Below are positions 3,108 to 19,975 of a stretch of 64,000 nt of DNA, piece after piece. This DNA is from Haliotis rubra. Taxonomy: Eukaryota. Position 1 is the stretch's first letter. The number at the start of each line of letters is the position of its first letter. Location: contig NW_025765392.1 of the NCBI RefSeq assembly GCF_003918875.1, positions 1,116,001-1,180,000 on the forward strand, read 5' to 3'. Both the position numbers and the translations under genes were made by a program. The notes beneath the pieces were generated by a model. It was not told the DNA's origin and did not search any database. It was given only the letters and a program-made list of their open reading frames with translations.

Positions 3108-4886
3108 TTATTTAGGGTTTCAGCATTACAAAGAGGGCTAGGCAGTAGGGAAAATAATGTGGTTCAGGGACTGTGAGACAGACTAAAACTTCAGCCGCTA
3201 ACGCTGTAGCTGTGTTGGTCTGTGGAGAGGGCATGACGTGACGGACAGGTGGTCCAGCCAATCGCTCGCTTACTGAGTCGGTCGCGACCATCTGTATGGT
3301 TGATATGACGCAATGAACAATCACAGCCCCCAGAAAGTCGTATTGAGTAAGAGCGGACTTCAGACAGGCAAAGGTTTTAGCCAGGAATGTGAGGCCGAAA
3401 TGCACTGTACAGCCTATATCTGAGGCCTGTTGTAATGGAATGTGTCTCGATCAAGTTGTGCGCTGCTGCTCCCGTGTGACGGGACTTATGTGAAAGCGTC
3501 ACGCACTGTTTGGGATACATCTTACGTCGTTCATTCCAATACGGATGTACTACAGCTTTTACTCTCAATCGTGAGTATCGTCAGACCACATGTCTGTCTC
3601 ATTCTCCCTCTTGTTCAATATACTTGCTGTTCTATCCTACTGAACATGAAGCAATTCTCCAACACTCTGTTGACAGTACGCATTACCAGATATAAATATA
3701 TGTCCATATATGTTTACCACTGTCTCGTGTCGACACAGATCTTGCCAGCTTAAATCCCAGTCGGCCTCAACTTTCCCTTTCTTTTTTCAATGTTCGGGTG
3801 AATCGGTTTTGTTTCACAGTTATGTGAATGTTCCAAAGTTTGTTCGAGCATTATCAAGAATTGTACTTATCTGATTACACGAGGATAGTCTAAACTATTG
3901 TTGTTCTCTTTTAAAGTTTTGACATTCCGTCGCACCTTCTTGAACAGAACCCCAACCCCGCACCCACGTTGAGTGGTAGTACGTTGTAAATGTATCACAT
4001 CACTTATCACAATAACTCAGCACAGTAAATATACTACTCAAAGAAACCAAACGCCCAATTATATCATATTTTACAGCCAGTCTGAAATGTCATAACATTA
4101 ACTCCAGTGGTGTAATTAGAGCCTGATGCTTCATTTTGGTTTCATATATCGCCTTAGATTGGAACCTGAGTTTCTAATATTCAATGTTTGTAATGTGTAA
4201 AAGCAACGTAGAGTAGTATTAGGACCGACGCACACCGTTTGCTTAACGTATCCGAGTAAATGTTGACTCGTGCAGCATTCAACACACGGGATGATGCGAC
4301 GAGTGTCAAGTGTTTGAGACGAAGAGGCCGGTAGCTTCAGACGTAACTCTGTTCTGAATCAGTGAGACAACAGCCTCTTGGACGGGGACATCTTGAGTAA
4401 CGAGGAGTTCTAAACGTGTTCACATCTGCATGAACCTCCATTAAATGACGCTTAAACACCAGTCCTGTATTGTCTGCAAGTCGTGATTTCACGTATAATA
4501 TCCGTCTGCATATGACCTTGTTTTGGTCTGGTGAGTATCAAGGCGGATACTTTTCACTGTCGACTGATCTTGTCGAAAAAAGCCTGATTATTTAATGTTC
4601 ATCTGTCAAAATTATGTCTGGAATTTAGCAGTGTTACGCTCAATGGATTCCTCTTGCGAGGTCATATTACAACACTCGTGCAAGGCATACCTTGCGATAC
4701 TTATCCGCGGGTCGTTTGGGGTCAGGCTTGCTTTGTTTTGCCTGTATGTCGGGTTGATCATGATCCGGGGTTAGCGTTATTTCTTCGGTTTTACTTTTGT
4801 GTCTCCTCAATTGAGGTTTTATTATTGTTGTTTTTTCCCCAGACACAGTAAAGACGATCTGAAGTGCAGACGGTTTCTTTCCGAAT

Positions 4887-4896
4887 ATGGGTCAAG
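4887..4896 (+). CDS. First coding exon (exon 4843-4896) of a myristoylated MARCKS/AKAP-like acidic protein gene; encodes M-G-Q plus 1 nt
   Basis: Acceptor ttttttccccAG at 4841-4842; ATG GGT CAA G followed by the consensus donor GTAAGT at 4897. Joins in frame to the next exon to give MGQVLSRKR. The acceptor implies an unidentified upstream non-coding exon. Confidence 0.7.
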
Positions 4897-5385
4897 GTAA
4901 GTCAGTCGACTAGGAATTGTCAGTCCACGTCTCCTGTATTGAAATGTCGGTTATGATGACGCAAAACCTTTTGAAATTCATTTTAAGTTCAAATGGTCTG
5001 ATATAGTACTCGACGTTTGATAGGGACAATCCGATATGAATATAAGTGGATACAAGTGTAAAACATTCATGTATCCATCACTCTCCTGAACGTTAACTTC
5101 CCTAAGCGGCATGTACATGTTATTTTGACGTACAAGAGATAGCTTGCTTTATAAGGGTGTAAGTAACTACAACCACACGTCGCACACGTTGTGCATGTCT
5201 TCAGATTTGTCTTCCATTTTTCTCAAACGTTGTTGAGTACAACCAAGTCTAATTCATGCTTTCTGTGTCTACTGACATGGGTAGCTTTTCTTTAAGTTTA
5301 TGTATTTCGTACAAGGTCATTTAGTTCATGTTTGTGTACAAGAAACAACATGAAGGCGAGAATTTATGGATGTCAACTTCTTTAT

Positions 5386-5463
5386 TTTGAGGGACACGAA
5401 TTTTCGGAGTATATTCTTACTCTGAAGAAGAAGAATATTCTCCGAAATGTCATGTCCCTCAAA
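5386..5463. repeat. 78-bp imperfect palindrome, possible Penelope-like terminal relic
   Basis: tttgagggaca..ttcggagtatattctt / aagaatattctccgaa..tgtccctcaaa. Confidence 0.5.
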
Positions 5464-5561
5464 GGGGGCGGTTGGGTAGCCTAACGGTTAAAGCGTTCGC
5501 TCGTCACGCGGAAGACCCGGGTTCGATTCCCCACATGGGTAAAGTGTGAAGCCAATTTCTG
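5464..5561 (+). mobile_element. SINE family A, 5' part only
   Basis: tRNA-like head with GGTTCGATTCC; no tail. Confidence 0.88.
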
Positions 5562-6354
5562 ATATGTGGCAAGTCTAGATGTCCACAGCTTCAATGAAGA
5601 AAGTCTCAGGGCTCCTTTGGCTCCTTTTCATTATATATATATATTTTTTATTATGAGCTTTTTCTCTGTGCAATATTTTCATTTCAGAGACTAGTTGTTA
5701 GTCTATACTTCGGTTATCAGTTCACACAGCTAAAACCGTAATCCGGCTTGTAGTCGAGAAAATGAATTTCGTTGAATATTTACATTCACACCAGTACCTA
5801 ATCACATCTAGACGGCTACTATATAAACACATTCACCTTTCAATTACACTTGGCTTAATCCGCCCCTTACGTATCTCTGTTTTCATAAGAGATATCATTT
5901 CACGGGTGTCAATTACGCTTAAACAAACACAGGCACTCTTAAGAGGGTTAACAAAATAACCACTAATTGTTAAGCAGCTTATCTGGCCACAAGTTGCTGA
6001 TTCGTTGCGGGTAGTCGGCTGTTCTGGTGGCGCCTGTGGCGATCGTTTCACAGCCTGAGGTCTATAATGCATCGTCTCAATGTTACTTATGCACGTGACG
6101 TGCAGCTTGACATAGATGCCATGGACGATAAAGGCGTCTTTGTTAGTTTTCCTTGTGGACGGTTTCCGTATGAAATTCTCAGTTCATTTTGAAAAGAAAT
6201 GAATACTGTTTTATTTTTGCGCTTTGAGCATGTTGTACATGGAAAACAGCGCATTACAAGCATGCTATTATTATTATTCTCCATCAATTTACTAAGGAAA
6301 AGTTAAGGACGGCCTATTTCTCTCATTACTATAGTTAATCGTAACACCACGCCA

Positions 6355-6522
6355 GACCCGTGAAAGTCCGGGTTAGAATATTGATCTTCAGTAACCCATG
6401 CTTGTCGTAAGAGGCGACTAACGGCACGGGTGGTCAGGCTCGCTGACTCGGTTGACACATGTCATCGGTTCCCAGTAGCTCAGATCGATGCTCATGCTGT
6501 TGATCACTGGATTGCCTGGTCA
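6355..6522 (+). mobile_element. SINE family B (Meta/MESC-like core), 3'-truncated
   Basis: gacccgtgaa..ccgggttagaa..cttgtcgtaagaggcgactaa core shared with the copies below; the domain name is from recall. Confidence 0.8.
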
Positions 6523-6711
6523 AGGACGGCGGCTACCGTTTCGTGCGTAGTGTATATTCATAGAGTTGCACATATCCAATATTGGAGAATAGGGTGAAAT
6601 ATTGGTCCTGTATTAGGAACGAATCATGTTACACTGTTACAATTATTTCTCCCAGACTGCACTGAACACAATCTAAAGGATCATATCAAAATCATTTCAC
6701 ACTTATTTCAG

Positions 6712-6873
6712 TTTTGTCCCGAAAACGGTCGGCTTCTGCCAACATTACAGCGCACAAAAGCGACGACGTGACGGCTAACAGCAATGGCGACGTCGTCAAA
6801 GCGGAGGCCAACGGTTCCGCAATCCAGTCGACGGGAATTGAATCAAAAGTAGAGGTGACAGAGACAGATGCAG
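6712..6873 (+). CDS. Coding exon 2 of the same gene (VLSRKRSASANITAHKSDDVTANSNGDVVKAEANGSAIQSTGIESKVEVTETDA)
   Basis: Acceptor ttatttcAG, donor CAG|GTAGCA; 162 nt, phase 1-1, open frame; GC-richer than the flanks. Confidence 0.72.
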
Positions 6874-7459
6874 GTAGCATTACATTTTCTTGACTAAAAC
6901 TATTAATACTTTTAACCTTATTTTCTCATGACCACAACCGAAATAATATTTTGCATATAAGTACATTGTAGCCAAGGACATTGGTTAAAATGTTGACATG
7001 CCAACATAGATCATTCTTAGAATTCCCGGTGGGTAGTCTTGTTGTTGAAGACTTGGGTTTGATTCTTGAAATGGGTACATCCTGTGAAACCCATTTATAG
7101 CCTCCCCCGACGTCATGTTGCTTAAATATTTCTAAAAGGGCCGTAAAAGCATACCCACCTACTCGTAATATTCCACGCCTTGATATTGATGGACTATTTC
7201 TAAAGGCCACGTGAGAGGACACTTGCTCGAAAAGCGATCTCCGTTTAAGGGTCAGGACACTAGGGTACGGTATTACATGTCGTTATCAGTCATGCACGAA
7301 GTGTAATGGAAGTCGACGGGCGATTGTTTGATTTTTTTCATGTTTTTCAAATGTTTTCGTTTCTGAAAGTCGAAATGTTAGTTTCTTTTGTGTCCAGGTA
7401 AGAGCCACAGGGCAGCTATTGGCCGTGTAGTATGCTTTCTTGTTTCCGGTACCCTCAAA

Positions 7460-7609
7460 GGGCGTTGGGCTAACCTAATGTTTTAAACGTCCGCTCGTCA
7501 TGCTGAAGACCCGGGTTCGATTCCCATATGGGTACAATGTGTAAAGCCTATTTCTGGTGTCTCCCGCCGTGATATTGCTGTAATATTGCTAAAAGCGGCG
7601 TAAAACCAT
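7460..7609 (+). mobile_element. SINE family A (diverged)
   Basis: Matches the other copies over its full length. Confidence 0.88.
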
Positions 7610-8660
7610 ATCCGGTAACTCACAGGCACGCTCAAGAAACGCTTGCCTGCACAACAATTTGCGACACAATAGACATGTAACCGTTTATTCCCGTATTTTT
7701 ATTTTGAGGAAGAAAATGTATTACAAATTCACTTCATCTTTAAAACGTATACACTATTTCCCTTACGCCACCCATAATCATCGGCTACTTGTGAAACAAA
7801 GGCGTCCACGTATCGATTGTTCAGGATCTAAAATTTTCAGAGCTTTTGAAGAACTTTCCTGTTACTTTGACACGACCAGGAACTCTATCAACTAGTCACG
7901 TTTAGCCTACCTGTTGACCAGGAAACTCTTTTAAATTACGTAGTCTTTCACTAGCCAGTGCAATAGTTTGTCGTTCATGACTATATATGTTTGCGTAACA
8001 AAACTGCAATGTTTGTTATGTTTTGAACGCTGCACTAATCGTGAATACAAGATCAGATTTGTTTAGTATAGTTTAACAAATACACACTTGCAGGTCGGTC
8101 ATGTGATTTGTGAATTTTGTTACCTGAATATTACATACACCTGATATATTTCCTTGAGCAGTTTGCGTCCATTACACGCAACATACACGTACTCGTCATT
8201 CGTGACATACTGCTGGCAGTTTTGACACATGTCGTTGTGCCTGTACCAATCGTCATATCCCCCAAACACGCCTGTCATCCCTCCAGCAACATTCCAATCG
8301 ACTGTAGATATCACCTGATGAAAGACATTCACATCGGCAATAAATACCCCCACCTAGCATGGGGGCATGATGGCGGAACATCTTAATGCTGGGGAGAGTG
8401 GAAAGTATATGTCAGAATAACACCGCAGGAAAAAGAACATATACCCCTTTTAATACTCTATTCTGAGAGGATGACATACATACTCGATTTGCGTTGAGAA
8501 TGTACCAACTGACGCATAACAAAATACGAAATTAACTTGGGCCTTGTCTCCGTGCGAAAATAATAATTAGTCGCAATCATATTGCGATGTTGCCACGAGA
8601 TGTGTCGTTCCTCCGAGATTTCAGAATCTCCCGCACCATCTGCTGATTGAACTCATGTAA

Positions 8661-8825
8661 CTAACTGACTGAGTTTGGTTTTACGCCGCTTTTAGCAATA
8701 TTCCAGCAACATCACGGCGGGGACACCAGAAATGGGCTTCACACATTGTACCCATGTGGGGATTCGAACCCGGGTCTTCGGCGTGACGAGCGAACGCTTT
8801 AACCACTAGGCTACCCCACCGCCCC
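8661..8825 (-). mobile_element. SINE family A
   Basis: Full length, TSD gaactcatgtaa. Confidence 0.95.
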
Positions 8826-9071
8826 GAACTCATGTAAAATTGTCACAGATAGGATTAAATCGGTTACAACTATGATCAGTAGCTCCCGGGAATATGAGGT
8901 GAGGAGGAATGGGTTTGAGATTATTGGTCTAATGCAGCTTTGTCTAACCTACGTGCATGCACTGTATATACATAAACACGTGTCCAGTGGGTATGTATCT
9001 ATTTGTGTCTGCATATGTATCTGTACTAGTCCGGACTACTGCATGTTTATAGCACAAGTTCATTGAGATAC

Positions 9072-9228
9072 GGGCCGGTGGGGTAGTCTAGCGGTTAAAG
9101 CGTTCGCTCGTAACGCCGAAGACCCGGGTTCGAATTCCCACAAGGGTACTATGTGTGAAGCCCATTTCTGGTGTCCCCCGCCGTGATATTGCTGGGATAT
9201 TGCTAAAAGCGGCGTAAAACCAAACTCA
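9072..9228 (+). mobile_element. SINE family A
   Basis: Full length, near-perfect TSD ttcattgag(a/t)tac. Confidence 0.93.
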
Positions 9229-9278
9229 TTCATTGAGTTACATAGTAACACAACGAAGACCCAATTTACAACGCAGAC

Positions 9279-9437
9279 CCAATTTACTGACTCCAAACCG
9301 CCCATTTCCTGTTTCATCCCCTCAATGCCGAGCGCCAGACAGGGAAACAACAAGTACCACGCTTTAACGGCTTTTGGTATCACGTAACTGGGAATCAAAC
9401 CCACCAGTCAGACGGTGTATCCACTACACCACAGGGG
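9279..9437 (-). mobile_element. 5' part of a family C-related SINE
   Basis: Reverse complement has a tRNA-like head and ccctgtctggcgctcggcattg..ggagtcagta, as in 44845-45147. Confidence 0.65.
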
Positions 9438-9523
9438 ACTTAAGACAATATGAACATCAACATAACCAGTTTACCGAGACGATAAGGCCACGTTATCGTA
9501 TTCATCGCACTTGTTTACATTTT

Positions 9524-9583
9524 CCGCCGCCATATAGCTGAGATATTGCTGAGTGCGGCGTAAAACTAAACTCACTCACTCAC
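9524..9583 (+). mobile_element. SINE family B, 3' tail only
   Basis: Hairpin plus (ACTC)n tail between TSDs tgtttacatttt. Confidence 0.85.
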
Positions 9584-9771
9584 TGTTTACATTTTGATCA
9601 GACAGTTCCATTAAAACTATAACTTGACCCCTGAAACATGTAACTTGAGAAATCTGTAACAATCACATTTCCCGAATATAGTTATTACTTAAATGTAAGG
9701 CGGGTTTATTTAATTTATTTTCCTCCTCTGAATCTGTACGGGGTATACTAAACTGTCAAATCTTCTCGTAG

Positions 9772-9915
9772 CACCAGTTAAAGAGAAGAAGAAGAGGAGA
9801 AGATTCTTCTTTAGCCTCAAGCGCACACGTCCGGGAAGCGGGCGAAAAAAGAAGGCGAAGAAAGACCGAAATGGGCAAGTCAACGCAGACACCTCCGGCA
9901 ACAGCAGCAAGAGTG
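9772..9915 (+). CDS. Coding exon 3: polybasic/Phe effector-like segment (APVKEKKKRRRFFFSLKRTRPGSGRKKKAKKDRNGQVNADTSGNSSKS)
   Basis: Acceptor tcttctcgtAG, donor GTG|GTAATA; 144 nt, phase 1-1, open in the frame set by exons 1-2. Confidence 0.75.
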
Positions 9916-10220
9916 GTAATAGAATCAGTACGTTCTGTAGAATAGCCTTTGGTGGTAGAACAAGGACATTCTGTAGAATAGCCTTTGGTGGTAGAACAAG
10001 GACGTTCTGTAGAATAGCTTTTGGTGGTAGAACAAGCTAGGAAGTTCTGTAGACTAGTTGGTGGTAATAGAACCAATACGTTCTGTAGAATAATCGGTCA
10101 TGGTTGAACAAGGACGTTCTGTGGACTGGGTGTTGTAGCAGAACCAGTCCGTCCTGTAGAGTGGTGGCGGTAGAACAAGTACGTTTTGTAGACAAGCCAT
10201 TGGTGGTAGTAGTGGAATCG
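9912..10220. repeat. Intronic minisatellite, about 36-bp unit
   Basis: Repeated gttctgtagaatagcctttggtggtagaacaaggac-like units, degenerating distally. Confidence 0.85.
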
Positions 10221-11054
10221 GTAAACTGCATTTTTCTGCAATAATTTGTTACAGCACCTAGCACCGTATCCCGCGCCCCTAATATCAAATACAGTTACCC
10301 ATATTTCCGTAAATATCAACATTCCCGTGTTGACTATGTCAACTCGTATGTTAGTTTTATCTTTGACCAAAGATAATAATATGCGAATGATGACGTCTTG
10401 TCAAGTAAAACATAGACCAAGTATGCAAGTCTGCAAGCGCTGAATGGGACGCTTGTCTCGTAAATGTAGTCATGTGTGTCCTGCGGGCAATAGGGCTCCA
10501 CCGGACAATGGACACGGTACGCTGTTATCAGATTCATCGGCTTACCGACTCAATGAGTTATGCGAGTCATGTACAGAGTTGAATATATAACGACCCATTG
10601 TTGTTGACTGCACAACTGACGTCGAGACATATCTGCTTCCACAAACCCAGTCTTATTCTCAGTATTATGTTTCAGGTTTGTTTATGGACGAGTTTCAGAT
10701 ACCGGAAGATGATGGTATTGATTCAGTCAGCCTGTCCTCAAACGGTAAGGTCAATATCAGTCGTCAATGATTGCAGTATATTGTTTGGTACCTTGAACAA
10801 CATCGATGGCAGTCGAATCGTATTCTAATGAAAAAGATTGTTATCAACAAGATATGTAGAGCGATTTTCTGTATCATTAACATTTGTCTGAAGTTGTAAT
10901 ACATAAACATGAGACCGAACAACCCATACGTAAAATAGTGTGTGTTTACTCAAACTTTGATAAACACAAACTTTGATATAGCGCAAAATTATTGAAGTGA
11001 ATTACTAGTATTACAAGTATATATGCCAACAGTAGTACCTTCACATGCTGCTTA

Positions 11055-11224
11055 GGGCGGTGGGGGTAGCCTAGTGGTTACGGCGTTCGCTCGTCTCGCC
11101 GAAGACCCGGGTTCGATTCCCCACATGGGTACAATGTGTAAAGCCCATTTCTGGAGTCCCCCGCCGTGATATTGCTGGAATATTGCTAAAAGCGGCGTAA
11201 AACTAAACTCACTCACTCACTCAC
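11055..11224 (+). mobile_element. SINE family A
   Basis: Full length, (ACTC)n tail, TSD tcacatgctgctta. Confidence 0.95.
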
Positions 11225-11416
11225 TCACATGCTGCTTATTTGATAAAAAAATCCACAAATATATCCCAGAAGCATAGTTCAGGGCAATAATACAATATGA
11301 CCACGGACGTTGGCCGCTGCCGGACGTGGCCTGATGTAGTTCTAAACAAATGCAGAATAAGCTTTGTTAGTAAATCACAAGGCATGATCTCATTTCGTTC
11401 ATTTATTTCCATTCAG

Positions 11417-14400
11417 AAGAGAAAGATAACAAGAAGAGGAAAGATAGTGGTGTTGCCATCAGGCGAAGCAAGCGAAACTCCAACAGTAAAAATGGAAAGA
11501 AAAAGAAAAAGAAGTCGGAGAAGAAGAAGGAAGAAAAGTCCAAGAAGAAGAAAAATTCCAAAGATGAGGGCAAGAGCAACGTTGTCGTGGCTGCTGCTGA
11601 CGGATCCTTGAACATCAGCAAGAGTGTAGAACCACTCCACGAATCTGTTGAAGCTGCCACAGATGAAGCTAAAGTATTAGCGTTGTCGGAGGAGAATGGT
11701 ACCCAGGTTCTGACATCAGACAATGCCGTTGAGGAAGATTTGGTAGCGGCTGTGACAGCTGTAATGGATTCCAACGTGTCTGAAGGTAAGATGGAAGCTG
11801 AACCATCAGCAGAAGAAATTGTAGCACCGACGACGGCTACAGAAGTGGCATCAGCTCCTTCTACTGAAAAGGTGTCGGTCACGGAAGAGGGACGAGAACG
11901 AGCTCTCAAAACCATTGTTGAAAGTTCTGCACAGGAAGAGATAATTCAGTCCGTCGAGGCGACAGTGCAAGAAGCTGCACCTAGCACAGAAACATCTGAC
12001 GGAGTCGCACCTTCATCTTCAGTAGCCGAGGTTGACCAACAGCCTGTTAGTCCTGTCGTATCAAACGCTGGTGACAATGGTGTCTTGAAGCGTGTGTCAC
12101 TGGGACCAAGACTAAAAACAGCAATTTTGAAGAAATATAGCGGTGCTGGAGATGCACCACCGGAGACCAGAGTTACTTTGACTAAACCCAAAATTGTGGA
12201 AGTAACTGATCTAGTGCCTCCTCCCAGGAAAAACAGACCTCGACGCACACTGTCGCAGACGGCGAGCACTACTTCTAGCAGTGATCTTAACACTAGTAGC
12301 AGTCTAAGTCCGTCTTCACCTCAGACGGATGATGACACAACAGTTGTTCCGGAAAAATCGGATGTGGGATCAGTTGTTGCACAAACACTCCAGGCAAGCA
12401 GTGATCTAAAAACTAACGTCAGTAGCGACGTAGATCCTTCAGCATCCACCATGGACAAGGGCAAGGACACTGAAGTTTCCTCATCAGAAAGGTTGGATGT
12501 GGGATCAGTTGTTGCACAGACACTTCTGTCCAGCTGTGATCTGAATACGAACGCCAGTAGCGACGTAGATCCTTCAGCATCCACCATGGACAAGGGCAAG
12601 GACACTGAAGTTTCCTCATCAGAAAGGTTGGATGTGGGATCAGTTGTTGCACAGACACTTCTGTCCAGCTGTGATCTGAATACGAACGCCAGTAGCGATG
12701 TAGATCCTTCAGCATCCACCATAGACAAGGGCAAGGACACTGAAGTTTCCTCATCAGAAAGGTTGGATGTGGAATCAGTTGTTGCACAAACACTCCTCTC
12801 CAGCTATGATCTGAATACGAACGCCAGTAGCGACGTAGATCCTTCAGCATCCACCATGGACAAGGACAAGGACACTGAAGTTTCCTCATCAGAAAGGTTG
12901 GATGTGGAATCAGTTGTTGCACAAACACTCCTCTCCAGCTGTGATCTGAATACGAACGCCAGTAGCGACGTAGATCCGTCAGCATCCACCATAGACAAGG
13001 ACAAGGACACCACCGTTACCTCGTTAGAACAGTTGGATGGAGAATCAATTGTTGCACAAACGGTCGAGGCCAGTGATCTGAACACTAACGTCAGTAGCGA
13101 CATAGATTCATCAGCAACTGCTACAGACAAGGATACAGCTAACACCGTTGAGAAGTCTGGCATTGAACCAACTGTTGAACAGGAACTCCAGTCCAGCAGT
13201 GAATGCAGTAGCCACGTTGATCCTCCTTCACTTAGGGCAGATGAGGATATACAAGGTATTTCCCAAGGAAAGACAGAATCAGGCTTGACCTCAACGGTCG
13301 TCAATATCGTCGAATCCCAAATTACTTCAGCCCCTGACATTGAGGTAACAGGTGGCGATGGGAGTACAGTTAATGTTGCTCTTGGGTCGGTTCTCAATGC
13401 AGATACTCAGTGTGTGATAACCGAAACTGTGTTAGCTCCTCTTGAAGCATCAGTTACTCTTGTAGAGAACGAGGATGAATCTCCTGTTAAAGCCATTCCG
13501 CTCTCTGATGCAGAATATAGAGATGGAGCTGGTTCAGAAGTCGTACCTAGCACGACACTTGCTGACCAGACTGAGACAGCTGTCGATGATATGGGGACAA
13601 ACACAGCTTCACTCTGCTTTGAGCCAACTCCAAAAGAAGAGCCTTCAGTAGATACAAGTGTAACAGAGCAAGTAACATCTCGAGAGCGCGCAGAGGTTGT
13701 GGAAGAAAGTGTGGCGTCCCAGTCGGAAGGTATGGTTGAAAGTGTACAACCAGATGCTCTTAAAGAAGAGTGTATTTTAAATGATATTGAGATTTACGTC
13801 GAACCTACGAAAACATTTGAGACTGAACCCGAAAAGCCAGATACAAACACTGAACCAGTTATCGTGATAGAGAGGATTCACACTGAACCTTATTACGGAC
13901 CTCTTCCTGGCAGTGAGGATGGTCAAAATGATGACACTGGGAGTGACGGTGTGGCGGACGTCACTGATGCAACCAAACAGAAATTCTCCCGCGAGACTGG
14001 AGAGGTTTGCAAAGAATGTGTTTGTGAGGATGAAGTTCCAATGAATGCAGATGAAGAAATTGCTGAAGTTACGGAAGTAGACGAAGTCGCTATAGTTGTC
14101 GAGAAAGTCATGAAAGTATCATCAGAGACTGAATCAGCCCTAAGTGATCATCAGTGCGTTAGTGCGACTGCTGAAACGCCCACTGAAGAGAGGCAAGAGG
14201 AAAGTTCGACAAATAAGGACAGTACTGGTCTGCACGCGGAAGACCATGACGAAAGCTCCAGCACAACAACCGACAGTACGATTGTTGACGAGGATGAACA
14301 CGACAGGACTATTGTTGAAGAAAAGAACGTAGCTAAAGAACCTGAAAACGAACACGCTTCAAATGAACGCAAACCTGCAATATGCAATGGTGACTCTAAT

Positions 14401-14680
14401 GGACTCACTCATGAGAGTGGCAGTGATTCTAGCTCCAGTGTGACAACTGAAACCTCCCGAGGTCAGGAGGAATGTACAGACACTGCTGTCGCCCATGAAG
14501 GCGACAGGAAAGTTGTGGTAGACTGTAACGATGAGCATATTGAGACATTGGTTGGCAAAGTTAATAGTGAGCACGATTCTTCAAGCCAGAGCGACAGAGA
14601 TCTGAGTGACAATAATAACAGTAAAATCATCATCTCGTCAGAACAAGAGAATATCATTGAGACCATCCAGAAAGTATCGG
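11417..14680 (+). CDS. Large coding exon 4 (1088 codons): Lys-rich start, then acidic Ser/Thr/Glu/Asp-rich, probably disordered region with a 45-aa repeat
   Basis: Acceptor tttccattcAG at 11415-11416, donor G|GTAAGT at 14681; 3264 nt, phase 1-1. Contains the 1035-aa ORF of the track, whose GTG start is not a real start. Confidence 0.88.
12361..13135 (+). repeat. Coding tandem repeat, 135 bp / 45 aa, 5 units plus a degenerate sixth
   Basis: Units start at 12361, 12496, 12631, 12766, 12901 and 13036 (DVGSVVAQTLLSSCDLNTNASSDVDPSASTMDKGKDTEVSSSERL). Confidence 0.95.
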
Positions 14681-15414
14681 GTAAGTGGCTGTAGTTTTGT
14701 CTTGAGTTTTATTATGATTTGTGTATTTCTCTTAAGGTAGATACAAATAATCGCGTGTTTTAACCGGGAATTAAATATTGATTCTGATGCAGTTAATAGC
14801 TGTTGCAGTAAAGGTAAAGGAGTGACGCTTTTGTAAGATCATGATTATTTAAGGTCTTGACTATGCAAGGTTATGATTGTAAAGCTGTCACATCATTCCT
14901 TTACAGTGACTTGTCTCATCTATGTCATCTTAGGCTATTGTCAAACTCCCCAGGGATTATACATTTAGGGATCCTTTCTATAGTATGCATCGCCATGACT
15001 TCAGGTAAAACTGACAGTCTACCAAACCACGAATACCGCTGGCCGAACCCCTTTTGCCATTGTACTAACAATTATACGACATGGATTCAACTTGTCAGCT
15101 TCATCATTGTGTGACGACTAGCTTTCACAAGCTGGTTTGGGGAATCAGTGTTGAGGGTAACAGGTGACTGTTTTTAGTTAGTAAAAATCTTTAAGCCCAT
15201 CGTGGAACACCCTAGGGTACGGATGCTTAAGATGCACAAGCTTTGAAATTAATAAAACGTAGGTGACATAAACTCTTTAGGATCATACACATGACTAGCC
15301 TTGGGTTTCTCTCATTTTTGTATACGTCCACTACAATCTACATTCCCTTTATTCTTTTCATCAGTATGTCGAGTCCAGAAAGTCGACATTTATATTTATG
15401 TAATGTTTGTGATA

Positions 15415-16414
15415 TACCGCTCAAAGTGTGCTTAGGATCACCGTTTTTAAGGTTGTGTGCATCTGTTGAAATAGCCAAAGATAATACTGAGTGAAGATAT
15501 GTTTTATGAACACAAATCTCTTAACATGTACAAGACAATCCAAACAAACAACCTGTAATCAATGATAAGTTAGATCAATACTCAGTCAAATTCAGAGTAT
15601 TTGATTCAGACATAAACTTAATAAAATCAAGAAAACCAAATCATTGTCACCTTCCCGGCAAATTCTCAGTAGCGTGTATGTAATACACGGGATGCGATCG
15701 CAGCCTGATACTGTCGTCTCTTGCTCCCATTAAGTGTCTGGATGGTTACATGGGAAACTGTTCCATTCTTCAGTAAGAGCATTGGCGAGTTTCTAGAGTT
15801 GCCGGAAGGAAAGCGCGTCGTGAGAGTCAGAGTACAAAAGTTAACGCCACTGGCGTTTGTGAGTATGGTGGCAGTCAGTAGCTGATGCTGCAAACACGTG
15901 TGTGGTGGAACGCTGTCGACCACCTGCAAGTCGCTGATTCAAGCGTCTTGTACCGATTCCATGTCTTTCTGATCACTCTTAGGGTGACACCAAAGATGTT
16001 TGCAACGTGAAGGTGTGTTGACATAGTTTCAACAACGCCTATGTATATGCCTAATATGCCGTTGGTCCGTCGACGTCTTTGACGCGGGGGTCGGGGTGGG
16101 GTAATAAGGGCTTCAGTTGTTGCCGTCTTCAGTAGCAAATGCTCTCTGAAAATGACATGCAACGATTCTGTCATGACATCATGCTCATGACAGCATGCCT
16201 CTCCGTTCACCACATCACAGGGGGGTGGGGGTAGGGGGGGTTACCCAATCATTTCGCCCCGGAATATTTCAATCTTCATGTGTTGAAGGTTTTCATATTA
16301 TAAAACGTGATCCTTAGCAAACTTTAAAACGTGATCCTTAGCAAACTTTAAAACGTGATCCTTAGCAAAATTTAAATATTATAAAACGTGATCCTTAGCA
16401 AAATTTGAATAGTA
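15415..16414 (-). mobile_element. Internally deleted Tc1-like DNA transposon
   Basis: Imperfect 27-bp TIRs (taccgctcaaagtgtgcttaggatcac / gtgatccttagcaaaatttgaatagta) flanked by TA; transposase relics VANIFGV..IRKTWNRY and C-terminal HTRY*. Confidence 0.75.
16301..16406. repeat. Four tandem copies of a 24-bp unit derived from the Tc1 TIR
   Basis: taaaacgtgatccttagcaaa at 16301, 16325, 16349 and 16382. Confidence 0.9.
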
Positions 16415-17819
16415 TAATTCATCTGCATGCATTGTCGGGATAAACCCTTTTCAAAGAATACTGTTAAGATCAAAATGGCTGTGAAAGGGGCTGTAAAATT
16501 ACCATTTCATCATTCATCACTCATTGTAAACGTCACATAAGAGTTAATCGTCAAGAATGACGATTCTGTAACATGCAGTGATACTTCACAGGGAGGTGTT
16601 GTATAAATGTCTAACCACAAAATGTCAACAACGTCGAGTTGAGAAGGCTATTGCCACAAATATATTTTGGAGGGTGTGTCTGCATTACATGCACACCGTC
16701 AGGTCCTATTCAGTGCTTGATATATCATATGTAACTATTTTTGGTATCATGGCTTACGCTTTTTCACTTTTATAGTTAGCAATTCAGTAACACGTTCTTC
16801 CATTTAAAAATGTTTAGACGAGGACATAGAATAATAGCAGTTGTCTTCTCCACAAAGTAAATCCCAAATGGTTGTGGGATCCCATTTCCATGTAACGACG
16901 TAAGCCGAGCAGCGGGACATGATATAGCCGTGCCCTGTAAACATTATCTGGATTAATGTGGAGGGGTCAGCATGTCAGACCAAGACGGATTTCAAACAAA
17001 ACATCTCGGCTCCTGGTCTTAAGTAGGCTGTAAATATACACCAGTGACATGGGGGAGATTGTAATTTCTAGATTTATTACATCGAACCTCTTCTAAACCA
17101 TAACACGGGAGTAAATGACATTCCAGTGTACTTGTCTAACAAAAGTACCCACTGACGATACGACTGGCTATTTTAAGATGATAAAAAGTGGGGCCGTTGC
17201 GTAGGTTTATTGGGTTACTGGGTTAACTGGTTTGAGAGCTCAATGAAATGTCGAGATATGATGTTAGAAGCAAGCCGTATTTTGCACAGATGACACGATA
17301 GTGGACTGTGCCCACCTACATTGTTAGTTGGGCACTAGTTCTGATGCAAACAATACTCAACAGCAAATGTAGATGATGCGAAATTACTTTGTTGGTAGAG
17401 CAGAACTCCATACGACACCACACACGAAGACCTGATAGTCAATGTTTATCAATCCAGAAAGGCTGAAATGGCTTCAGAATATGATCCCGAAGAGATTTCG
17501 TCTTTATTGCGTTATGTTTCTTAATAGCCGAACAGATTGTGAAACGAGGTGTCACAGTGTGATTTAGATTATTTTATGCTACCTTACCGTATGGAATTAC
17601 CGCTGATTTGCCGGGGACAGATAAAACTTCACCACATGTGATAGTAGTAGTTTTGATCTTTCGATGATACTTAAAATAATTTTAAGTGTATTTATATCCC
17701 ATGGAGATAAGGTGAAACTGGTCTGACTTGAATGTTTCCGATTGCGATTTTATACAGTAGTGATGCATTATGTTGGGTTAGGTGTCGTGACACTCGGTAC
17801 ATGCATCATTAAACTATAC

Positions 17820-18030
17820 GGTCCATGGTCCCTAGTATGGTGATCAAAGTTAACATATTTTAGATTTTCATACTAGTTTTACAATTATATCTTTGACATT
17901 CTAGCTATTTTTACTGTCCTTCGCTGACAGGTTTCTAATATTTACCATGATTTATTATGAAATTATATCTTGTATTTAGTCACGATATGGCTGAAAGATT
18001 GCAGATGTGACTTAAAATCATAACTCACTC
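17820..18030 (+). mobile_element. 5'-truncated 3' end of the I/Nimb-type LINE
   Basis: Homologous to the reverse complement of 58150-58420, including the terminal hairpin and ACTC tail. Confidence 0.8.
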
Positions 18031-18078
18031 TCTAAATAAACGATGCGGTAATGTGTCCATGGTGTTCTGTACCAAGTC

Positions 18079-18244
18079 GGGGGCGATAGGGTAGCCTAGT
18101 GGTTAAAGCGTTCGTTCATCACGCCGAGAACCCGGGTTCGATTCTCTACATGGGAACAATATGTGAAACCCATTCTAGTGTCCCCCGCCGTGATATTGCT
18201 GGAATTTGTTCTAAAAGCGGCGTAAAGTCAACTCACTCACTCAC
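18079..18244 (+). mobile_element. SINE family A
   Basis: Full length, somewhat diverged. Confidence 0.9.
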
Positions 18245-19904
18245 GCACCAAATCGTGTGCATCACGTACATGGAAACTGGGAATTCGTGAATGACGGTTA
18301 CTTCTACAGTTTCTTCTATAGGTTATATGCGTTAATCATGCCATTTCCCAAATATTTGTGATTGTGTTCATAGTTTCAACAACCCGTACAGTGTACTACT
18401 GTGCCGTGAAGATGAACGCTATTTCGGTAGTTAATCCCACCATGGACAGACAGTCACGTTTTGTGTGATCGCCCCTGCTTAACTGTTTCCCCCTGAACAA
18501 TGTACAGTGGACGTGACGAAGTGGGTGTTACCACGTCCAGGAGATGAAATATATCCTTATCTCTCTGGAAGACAAGCCTAATGCATTGCCAGATTCGCCC
18601 TTTGTGCTACAGGAGAAATTCCTCTTTTTACGCATGCCTTCTGCTGACCTCTCAGCTCTTACACAGACGTAAACACACTTTGCCCTGTAAGGTGTATACG
18701 TGATCACGATGCGTACCCCAGTGATGTTCAGGACAATTCATCCATGAACAGTTTATATATGTTTTCAAATTATGTTACCCACTCTTGTTTAACAGTTGTT
18801 TGATCAAGGCCTTGATACAGCTTTCAAAACGTATGGTAGACTTCTGGATGGCATTTCTAAATTTTATTCGTCAATGACGAACATTTTGTGAGATTTGATC
18901 TGGATTTTAGGTGTTATAAATGAATTTCCTGTGATTTTTGTTTGTGATCAACTTTGCATCAGGTTGTTACGGGTCCAGCAAGATATAATCGTTTCCCGAA
19001 CACCCGGTGTACGCACCAGTTGCAAGTCGCTCATAGGTACCTGCTTGTCCTTTTGTAATACACCCGGCTTTGGGGATAGTTTTTTTGCCATCGTTTCGTT
19101 GTATTTATTCCAGAGAATACACGTAGATTAGCTTGAATAACCACGGACCCCCTTCAAGAGTACATGCTGAGTGTCAAACACTTGAAACCATGGACATATA
19201 TAAACCTACATCAGAGGCAATGCCATAGTATTGGTGCATTCTCAGATCTGAAATCAGTCCTGCGGGCTGTGTTGCAGATTTTACAGACGCCTCGGTCGGT
19301 TAAAAATTGAATGCAAAAACAGCGCTTCATTGAATTCTCAGACCGATGACATCTGCTTTCATGGCGTGGTATCAGCAGATAATCGGTCCAATAATTGTTT
19401 TACAATAACACAAAATGTGATGGCATTGTTATAAATGTATAAGTCCTGCATCGCTTCGGGCCTTTCCGACACTAAGCTGAAACACCTTTAAATACTGACC
19501 AAAGCGGCGTTTACTGCAACCCACTCACTGATGGTGTAGTTACTACTAGTTAGTTTCATTCGTTTATGAACAGAGGGATATGATAAGAAAGCGTGTATAC
19601 AACTGTAATATGACAGTCTACGCGTGCTTTTTTCAACCAGAAGGCTGCGTTATATTTTTCTCATCTAATATGGCCCACCCCTCAGCATTGTTCTTCATTA
19701 GGTCAAAGATAAGAACCTGTGTTAAACACCTGGCTTCAGGCGACCACAAATAGCGCAAGCTATGAGCATGAATGGGGCATGTCAACATGTATTGCATTTG
19801 TTCTTGTTGCGGACCCTTCCTAATGGTCATGGAGTGCAGACCGAATGTTACCCCTACGCTTGTTTGCTTTTGACTTTTTGTACAACTGAATCACATTGTT
19901 ACAG

Positions 19905-19975
19905 ATCCCGTGAACCTAGTCTTGTCCGATAATTACACGTCAACTGCAGCTGCCGAGACGGTGGCTGGGGAGTGA
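19905..19975 (+). CDS. Probable terminal coding exon (DPVNLVLSDNYTSTAAAETVAGE*)
   Basis: T-rich tract and ttgttacAG acceptor; a phase-1 join gives an acidic, Ala/Thr-rich end and TGA at 19973-19975. An alternative acceptor exists at 20971-20972. Confidence 0.5.

Follow-up and report, generated by a model that had tools for sequence, protein, structure and literature searches.

The myristoyl-electrostatic switch is known from MARCKS, Akap200 and AKAP12. For Akap200, the literature (PMC5831198 and the Li/Rossi papers of 1999 that it cites) describes an N-terminal Met-Gly...Ser-Lys motif, a polybasic, Phe- and Ser-containing MARCKS-like block and a long acidic low-complexity remainder. In the abalone Haliotis rubra, a spliced gene on the plus strand of contig NW_025765392.1 encodes a protein that appears to follow the same design. 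The gene lies at 4843-19975 of the 64,000-nucleotide stretch analysed here (contig positions 1,116,001 to 1,180,000; hereafter the window, whose numbering we use). Its N-terminal module recurs in large proteins of several gastropod clades, and a membrane-tethered scaffold with a myristoyl-electrostatic switch is, judging from sequence comparison and structure prediction, the best explanation for it, one that we consider probable.

The abalone gene is real and is expressed as spliced RNA. The initial annotation had joined five exons, and all of their introns are indeed of the GT..AG type and leave one open frame of 1216 residues; it overlooked, however, a 69-nt exon at 10676-10744. This exon encodes 23 residues (GLFMDEFQIPEDDGIDSVSLSSN) between exon 3 and the large exon and is present in the RefSeq proteins. 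RefSeq isoform X2 is reproduced exactly only when it is included: the six-exon coding sequence taken from the window equals isoform X2 letter for letter (1239 residues). The gene had also been called hidden. While it is absent from the open reading frame track, it is already annotated in RefSeq, where a word-indexed search of proteins, with the large exon as query, found it under the name 'serine-rich adhesin for platelets-like', with an isoform X2 of 1239 and an isoform X3 of 1200 residues. The same kind of search matched orthologues from H. asinina, H. rufescens and H. cracherodii. The coding exons are the following (slashes mark splice borders here and below).

4843-4896, plus strand: ATG-containing exon, with 5' untranslated region at 4843-4886 and the ATG at 4887; encodes M-G-Q and the first base of V4.
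6712-6873, plus strand: coding exon 2, which completes the myristoylation motif (VLSRKRSAS) and includes the conserved segment NGDVVKAEANG (6783-6815).
9772-9915, plus strand: coding exon 3, with the polybasic effector-like block KEKKKRRRFFFSLKRTRPGSGRKKKAKK at 9780-9863.
10676-10744, plus strand: 69-nt coding exon, (G)LFMDEFQIPEDDGIDSVSLSSN, with acceptor tttcag/GT and donor G/gtaagg.
11417-14680, plus strand: large coding exon, with the second Lys-rich block, a candidate helix, island 2, the tandem repeats and an acidic tail predicted to be disordered.
19905-19975, plus strand: last coding exon, DPVNLVLSDNYTSTAAAETVAGE, with stop TGA at 19973-19975, followed by the 3' untranslated region.

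The ATG exon is bordered by the acceptor ttttttccccag/ACACAG and the donor CAAG/gtaagt; an in-frame TGA at 4860-4862 lies upstream of the ATG, whose context, AATATGG, is a good one. Isoform X3 uses an alternative exon-3 donor, 9927/gtacgt, which inserts GNRI. Transcript evidence came from four public runs mapped onto 4300-10299, labelled X1, X3, X5 and X7 (labels that are separate from those of the RefSeq isoforms). Run X5 behaved as genomic DNA, with every intron bin at a depth of about 18-24, and runs X1, X3 and X7 behaved as cDNA, with zero depth in unique intron bins. Three contigs from two studies (record 1 of run X1, record 8 of run X3 and record 29 of run X7) hold 6710-6871 and 9770-9917 side by side. 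The junction 6873/9772, which the initial annotation had proposed, is therefore confirmed, with a 2-nt AG ambiguity. In these contigs the exon-3 pieces extend two letters (GT) beyond 9915, to 9917, which fits a next exon at 10676 (GT TTG TTT...) and not one at 11417 (AAGAG...). Thus, the direct junction 9915/11417 of the initial annotation does not agree with these transcripts, which continue instead with the GT of the 69-nt exon. Further upstream, contigs of runs X1 and X3 cover about 52 nt of the 4700-4899 bin and stop near 4842/4843, and we therefore place the ATG exon at 4843-4896, after a good acceptor. Since the cDNA contigs hold about 185-214 nt of additional 5' sequence with no placement within 4300-4842, at least one non-coding exon and the promoter lie further upstream, possibly outside the window. 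Junction 4896/6712 is supported indirectly, by the contigs of runs X1 and X3, the AG carry-over at 6710-6711 and the RefSeq model. As for the junctions 9915/10676, 10744/11417 and 14680/19905, the exact match to RefSeq and conservation across species argue for them; the C-terminus encoded by 19905-19975 is identical in isoforms X2 and X3 and conserved in three other Haliotis species.

The introns are crowded with very high-copy repeats (5300-5700, 6300-6700, 7300-7700, 8500-8900, 9100-9300 and 9500-9700), over which the summed contig depth exceeds that of unique bins thousands-fold in DNA and cDNA runs alike, with many rearranged joints. The segment around 5470-5545 has a tRNA-derived appearance, resembling a short interspersed element, and ARAGORN called no tRNA in this tRNA-like intronic repeat. 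A 36-bp tandem repeat of about five copies (9913-10122) begins at the exon-3 donor, and the alternative donor of isoform X3 at 9927 falls at the edge of this repeat.

The encoded protein starts with Gly2, Ser6 and basic residues at positions 7-9 (MGQVLSRKR). As the initial annotation had claimed, this start agrees with an N-myristoylation consensus at Gly2, in the sense of a pattern match to PROSITE PS00008 (G-{EDRKHPFYW}-x(2)-[STAGCN]-{P}), and the peptides quoted there, MGQVLSRKR, TANSNGDVVKAEANGS and KEKKKRRRFFFSLKRTRPGSGRKKKAKK, are all encoded by the joined exons. The start is the first element of an N-terminal module in which MGxxxS[KR][KR] is followed by NGD..ANG, by a polybasic block of net charge +11 to +14 around F-x-F-S-L-K-R, and by LFxEE..IPEDD..V.LS. 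For proteins retrieved with island 2, a motif of the large exon described below, the N-termini constitute an independent test of the N-terminal claim. Across 11 aligned N-termini, M1, G2, S6, N28, G29, N37, K61, K63, F71, L73, R75, G79, N91 and G92 do not vary, and S10, S72 and V123 hardly do; an NG...N pattern is conserved in the family between the Gly2 motif and the polybasic block. Of 13 full-length gastropod proteins, 11 match PS00008 at their N-terminus, and two more, which match it internally, fit once miscalled starts are corrected. One of these two comes from an independent, full-length mRNA contig of a caenogastropod: translation from its first ATG, which has a good context and an in-frame stop upstream, yields MGQKSSKRQS and identifies the longer 'MTRLVN' start as an artefact of a GTG call. 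Two further irregularities of gene models are a spurious N-terminal extension in one Pomacea canaliculata model and the split of the Elysia chlorotica gene into the adjacent models EGW08_013473/013474.

The polybasic block of Haliotis (KKKRRRFFFSLKRTRPGSGRKKKAKK) carries a net charge of +14 in 25 residues together with three Phe and two to three Ser/Thr, S72 and T76 lying in F-S-L-K-R-T. Its core in the family is [RK]-F-x-F-[ST]-L-[KR]-R-[ST]-x-x-S-G-[KR], of which F-S/T-L-K/R-R is invariant in about 15 species from four gastropod clades. When the first 260 residues were scanned for the best hydrophobic-containing 25-residue window, the same block was found in every species checked except for the truncated Elysia chlorotica model; leaving that model aside, the window has a net charge of +11 to +14, with 3-6 residues that are large and hydrophobic (F, W, Y, L, I or M) and as many Ser/Thr (3-6). 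The acidic/hydrophobic motif LFxEE..IPEDD.(K)IE(T)V.LS, encoded by the 69-nt exon, is likewise conserved from Haliotis to Aplysia; compared by eye, it fits neither FFAT nor clathrin-box nor B56 LxxIxE motifs. A function of the N-terminal module is argued for most strongly by its conservation within a chain that otherwise evolves fast.

The remainder of the protein is of a very different character. Residues 1-190 have an isoelectric point (pI) of 10.2 and a net charge of +23, as against a pI of 4.05 and a net charge of -146 for residues 191-1239; both the second Lys-rich block and the acidic tail, of about 1050 residues, are present as initially described. The whole chain of 1239 residues is rich in Ser, Glu, Val, Thr and Asp (Ser 14%, Glu 11%, Val 10%, Ala 8%). 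AlphaFold2, run on isoform X3 with a six-sequence alignment, gave a mean predicted local distance difference test (pLDDT) score of 31.7; all but five of the 1200 residues (1195) scored below 50, and two short helices only were predicted. In isoform X2 numbering these helices are residues 232-245 (AVEEDLVAAVTAVM) and 359-369 (PRLKTAILKKY, in island 2, with the highest pLDDT of the protein). Outside the conserved motifs the chain is acidic and predicted to be disordered. It includes the following features.

11422-11577, plus strand: second polybasic Lys-rich block, residues 131-182, with RRSKRNS and KKKKKKSEKKKEEKSKKKK; +10 to +15 per 40 residues.
11725-11781, plus strand: candidate helix AVEEDLVAAVTAVMDSNVS, residues 232-250; helical in the AlphaFold2 model and invariant in four Haliotis species.
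12079-12255, plus strand: island 2, residues 350-408, GVLKRVSLGPRLKTAILKKYSG...RVTLTKPKIVEV..PPPRKNRPRRTLS; the family signature.
12360-13116, plus strand: 135-bp (45-residue) coding tandem repeat, 5.6 copies, 92% match.

The second Lys-rich block is nearly invariant in four Haliotis species, and other gastropods have a K-rich block with an RRGS/NGSQKK core. Island 2 consists of a basic amphipathic helix, as predicted, and a Pro/Arg-rich motif, PPPRKxRPRR, which by eye does not fit SH3 or EVH1 ligands. The 45-residue repeat differs by one unit between isoforms X2 and X3 and varies in number and form among Haliotis species; in H. rufescens and H. cracherodii a different, longer unit replaces it. 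The sole above-cutoff Pfam match, TrpBP (PF02081), falls in these repeats; no single stretch passes on the full-length protein, and we regard the match as spurious.

The name in RefSeq, together with 'PGA55-like' and 'mucin-22-like' for other members, and a Ser/Thr/Asp/Glu-rich composition with tandem repeats, might suggest a secreted or surface adhesin, mucin or shell-matrix protein. However, residues 1-25 do not form a signal peptide (mean Kyte-Doolittle hydropathy (KD) -0.53, charges from position 7), no segment is of transmembrane grade (maximum KD over 19 residues, 1.25), the conserved N-terminus is a motif of the cytosolic lipidation type, and no family match backs the adhesin or mucin names. 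Secretion is therefore close to refuted, and we give it next to no credence. Spliced contigs exist, the start retains Gly2 and no confident match to a secreted family was obtained, so that nothing which the initial annotation regarded as fatal to its proposal was encountered. The analysis shows how the gene is built, that it is expressed as spliced RNA, that the motifs are conserved, that a signal peptide or transmembrane segment is lacking, how charge is distributed along the chain and that disorder is predicted.

From this arrangement we infer myristoylation, membrane binding, regulation by protein kinase C (PKC) or calmodulin, and a role as a scaffold. In the proposed mechanism, the initiator Met would be removed and Gly2 of MGQVLSRKR N-myristoylated. 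The myristate, the basic residues 7-9 and the polybasic/aromatic block about 60 residues further on would then cooperate to keep the protein attached to the inner, acidic leaflet of the plasma membrane, possibly sequestering phosphatidylinositol 4,5-bisphosphate (PI(4,5)P2). Phosphorylation of Ser72/Thr76 (F-S-L-K-R-T) or binding of Ca2+/calmodulin might neutralise the block and release the protein. The acidic tail of about 1050 residues, LFxEE..IPEDD..V.LS, the second Lys-rich block and island 2 may serve as docking sites of the scaffold.

Several points weigh against such a switch scaffold. Polybasic blocks can equally be nuclear localisation signals or binders of the cytoskeleton or of nucleic acids. 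PS00008 is a permissive pattern, and the paralogue-B clade (Babylonia B and Nucella; MGN.(G/T)LGGSKRQS) retains Gly2 and yet fails it. Read data back the junction 4896/6712, which splits the Gly2 motif, only indirectly. Finally, Pfam models PF02063, PF03832 and PF10522 gave nothing at E<=10 when hmmscan was applied to the exon translations, to the Haliotis and Littorina proteins at full length, to 11 N-termini and to 13 helix segments (HMMER filters may drop very weak matches), and function therefore cannot be transferred by homology. As to paralogues, neogastropods have two, both seen in Babylonia areolata; the start of paralogue B, which is the one seen in Nucella lapillus, can be written MGN(M/V)(G/T)LGGSKRQS, and use of the internal Met4 in Babylonia B would restore PS00008.

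The most direct challenge to membrane attachment is that the basic blocks might be nuclear or nucleolar localisation signals and the protein, like nucleolin or Nopp140, an acidic chaperone or scaffold of the nucleus, in which case the Gly2 motif would be incidental. Two Lys/Arg-rich blocks ahead of a very long disordered tail rich in Ser, Glu and Asp would fit such a protein, and the MARCKS effector domain itself can serve as a nuclear localisation signal, according to one report (PMC4607481). On the other hand, M1-G2-x-x-x-S6-[KR][KR] is invariant over more than 15 species of four clades within a fast-diverging chain, and the conserved Phe/Leu and Ser/Thr (F-x-F-S-L-K-R) typify membrane/calmodulin effector domains rather than plain localisation signals. 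We therefore think a nuclear role quite unlikely. About equally improbable, in our judgement, is a role at the cytoskeleton in the manner of MAP1B/futsch, with a KKEE-like Lys-rich block as the binding site for microtubules or actin and only a secondary part for membrane attachment. The Littorina orthologue is named 'microtubule-associated protein futsch-like' in RefSeq, there are Lys/Glu-rich stretches (KKKEEKSKKKK), and the basic coiled segment SPAQLKALEKE...KKRLKE is conserved in caenogastropods and heterobranchs (apogastropods); actin is also bound by effector domains of the MARCKS type, as stated in the paper on Akap200 cited above (PMC5831198). Yet no Pfam domain of microtubule-associated proteins was detected, the names follow composition (adhesin, PGA55, titin and mucin are used for the same family), and the conserved Gly2 motif would be left unexplained. 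Cytoskeletal binding and the switch scaffold are not exclusive; the two are compatible.

How widely is the module distributed? Word-indexed searches with the large exon and with residues 1-230 found only Haliotis proteins and, with the latter query, one distant relative, the 1514-residue 'futsch-like' protein of Littorina saxatilis. This protein shares the N-terminus, the polybasic block, LFxEE..IPEDD and the island GVLRKIELGPRLRTAILRK...PPPRKQRPRRP (BLASTP 3e-15 and 1e-11). An exhaustive HMMER search of 1.84 billion representatives with the island-2 profile extended the family considerably: 28 matches reached E<=1e-3, and of these 19 also reached E<=1e-10. Proteins of 0.75-2.2 thousand residues and one fragment of 131 residues make up the true members, the remaining matches being unrelated repeat proteins. 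All named members are gastropod: Gigantopelta, Littorina, Batillaria, Pomacea, Babylonia (two paralogues), Nucella, Aplysia, three Elysia and Plakobranchus, to which a search with an N-terminal profile added Lymnaea. The family thus spans all four of the major gastropod clades represented here, Vetigastropoda, Neomphaliones, Caenogastropoda and Heterobranchia, and no member was found outside Gastropoda by the exhaustive island-2 search or by the N-terminal profile search, the latter word-indexed and confined to proteins of 102-324 residues. Against the Protein Data Bank (PDB), the N-terminal profile had no match and the island-2 profile only chance-level matches to TamA; an ESM Atlas feature search with Haliotis residues 1-230 and Plakobranchus residues 1-330 gave no usable match. 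The database names within the family (adhesin, PGA55-like, mucin-22-like, titin homolog, futsch-like, hypothetical, uncharacterized) are compositional labels, those of adhesin, mucin, titin and futsch included.

Only the N-terminal module and island 2 are common to all clades, and Haliotis and Gigantopelta share nothing else with the others, which points to the N-terminal module as the core function. Caenogastropods and heterobranchs have additional shared or clade-specific motifs, among them SPTLVSTASIVL, a C-terminal TI(D/E)AYLKLQ and the basic coiled segment. Allowing up to 1-3 substitutions, depending on the motif, none of SPTLVSTASIVL, TI(D/E)AYLKLQ, RCNGSH, QQFNKNYYDI, VPKRLSSLFHKK and SPAQLKALEKE was found in Haliotis. 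In heterobranchs a second effector-like block, VPKRLSSLFHKK, of the form KK(I/M)KVPK(R/K)LSS(L/W)F(H/S)KK(D/E)KQP(K/R), stands behind a long Lys/Glu coiled segment; located at residues 640-651 and 775-786 in two orthologues, it resembles the AKAP12 WSK motif or the Akap200 site and has no Pfam match. Overall, this gastropod-wide family is probably one of large intracellular disordered proteins whose constant part is an N-terminal membrane-attachment module.

A further question is whether anchoring of protein kinase A (PKA) is a second, or even the main, function of the protein. As an A-kinase anchoring protein (AKAP), it would dock the regulatory-subunit dimer of PKA on an amphipathic helix, and its N-terminal module would bring the kinase to the membrane, as happens with Akap200-L and AKAP12. 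What suggests this is a gap-free helix of the form L-x-x-[MVLIF]-A-x-x-[IVLM]-V-...-A-Q that is common to caenogastropod and heterobranch orthologues (LDAMASSIVAETMDIAQKRL, LQKVATEVVVRVQKVAQEK, LQELAREVVTRVQQAAQLE), exemplified by the following peptides.

AKAP-like helix peptide, Aplysia: LEAMASSIVAESVNLAQKRL.
AKAP-like helix peptide, Littorina: LQELAREVVTRVQQAAQ.

A profile of 13 apogastropod helices has a single PDB match, the kinase-binding peptide of D-AKAP2/AKAP10 (3im4_C), in the expected register (KIAKMIVSDVMQQAQ). This match is non-significant (E=0.77), however, and the control profile of island 2 gave an equally good chance match, to TamA. Single helices have no PDB match, RII_binding_1 (PF10522) does not match either, and the loose AKAP regular expression fires often in Ala/Val/Glu-rich chains. 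Moreover, the helix precedes island 2 in heterobranchs and follows it in caenogastropods. In Haliotis, one of the two predicted helices, residues 232-245, is invariant in four species and might be considered a counterpart, but the longer AVEEDLVAAVTAVMDSNVS is amphipathic with only a loose fit to the AKAP pattern, and the helix profile does not rise above chance in Haliotis or Gigantopelta by hmmsearch and an ungapped scan (best score -7.8 versus a mean shuffled maximum of -6.1). We consider PKA anchoring an unlikely account of the protein. The sequence pattern makes anchoring by the apogastropod proteins a lead; anchoring by the abalone protein appears unlikely, or at least undetected. Each 45-residue repeat unit of the abalone protein contains LDVESVVAQTLLSS, a stretch with a loose likeness to the helix of the apogastropods (S-[VI]-V-A-[QE]-T), but out of register and with no helix predicted.

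A broader proposal would combine the switch scaffold with PKA anchoring. The family might be the gastropod counterpart of Akap200/AKAP12: a switch scaffold whose caenogastropod and heterobranch members, those of Aplysia and Lymnaea among them, would also anchor PKA through L-x-x-M-A-x-x-V-V...AQ, its design being either independent or diverged beyond recognition, with the helix lost or replaced in the abalone/Gigantopelta lineage. We put this forward tentatively, as possible but on balance doubtful. If it were true, PKC or Ca2+/calmodulin would control the position of PKA at the membrane, and the protein would be a candidate membrane AKAP in molluscan synaptic plasticity that depends on PKA and PKC.

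The switch scaffold, which we continue to prefer, offers a testable function for a gastropod-wide family so far named by composition only. A literature search on AKAP and MARCKS in Aplysia and other molluscs returned no description of this family and no molluscan protein of the MARCKS type. Aplysia and Lymnaea are classic systems of PKC/PKA-dependent plasticity, and a conserved scaffold with a myristoyl/polybasic module, perhaps an AKAP as well, suggests itself for study there. The lineages of abalone and sea hare split several hundred million years ago, and the family provides, from the one to the other, a clean case of short linear motifs that stay fixed amid the turnover of a disordered chain.

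How, then, does the family compare with the known systems? The initial annotation's likening of the protein to MARCKS, AKAP12 and Akap200 holds for the design, which is present and conserved across Gastropoda, but is not borne out by any match to the corresponding Pfam families. As far as sequence comparison can tell, the protein is an analogue, not a demonstrable homologue, of MARCKS and AKAP12; the matches of the N-terminal profile in the range of 102-324 residues included gastropod fragments only and no MARCKS. Like MARCKS and MARCKSL1, it has a Gly2 myristoylation motif, a polybasic block with Phe and candidate Ser of the PKC type and an acidic chain predicted to be natively unfolded, and a conserved Asn/Gly-containing segment lies between the Gly2 motif and the polybasic block, roughly where MH2 sits in MARCKS. 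Unlike MARCKS, which has about 200-330 residues and is Ala-rich, the abalone protein is four to six times longer (1239 residues) and not Ala-rich (Ala 8%), and PF02063 matches none of the 11 family N-termini at E<=10. The MARCKS effector domain has five Phe and four Ser, compared with three Phe and two to three Ser/Thr in the block described here.

Drosophila Akap200 (DAKAP200), with its long and short isoforms, shares with the gastropod proteins the Gly2 motif, a single polybasic Phe/Ser block in the first ~150 residues and the acidic low-complexity remainder, as well as alternative splicing near the N-terminal module and, in apogastropod orthologues, a candidate helix of the RII type. The conserved gastropod motifs LFxEE..IPEDD..V.LS and island 2 (basic helix and PPPRKxRPRR) have not been described for Akap200; the gastropod proteins are also larger (0.9-2.2 thousand residues), and Haliotis is without a detectable RII-type helix. 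With AKAP12/gravin/SSeCKS the family has in common a predicted myristoylated N-terminus, several polybasic blocks, an acidic chain of more than 1000 residues that is predicted to be disordered, the proposed logic of a PKC substrate and, in apogastropod orthologues, a candidate for a kinase-anchoring helix far from the N-terminus. It differs in having no match to WSK (PF03832) or RII_binding_1 (PF10522) and no sequence similarity that we could find; to our knowledge, AKAP12 is a vertebrate family, whereas the family described here was detected in gastropods only. The placing of the Gly2 motif directly before Lys/Arg (MGQVLSRKR) recalls N-termini of BASP1/CAP-23 and the Src type, such as MGGKLSKKKK and MGSSKSKPK, and the chain of BASP1 is acidic and disordered as well. 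In those proteins, though, the immediate basic cluster stands alone, while the gastropod proteins have a separate, much stronger polybasic/aromatic block 60-110 residues downstream and a far longer chain. In the gastropod family, the design of MARCKS, Akap200 and AKAP12 thus appears to recur without detectable sequence homology.

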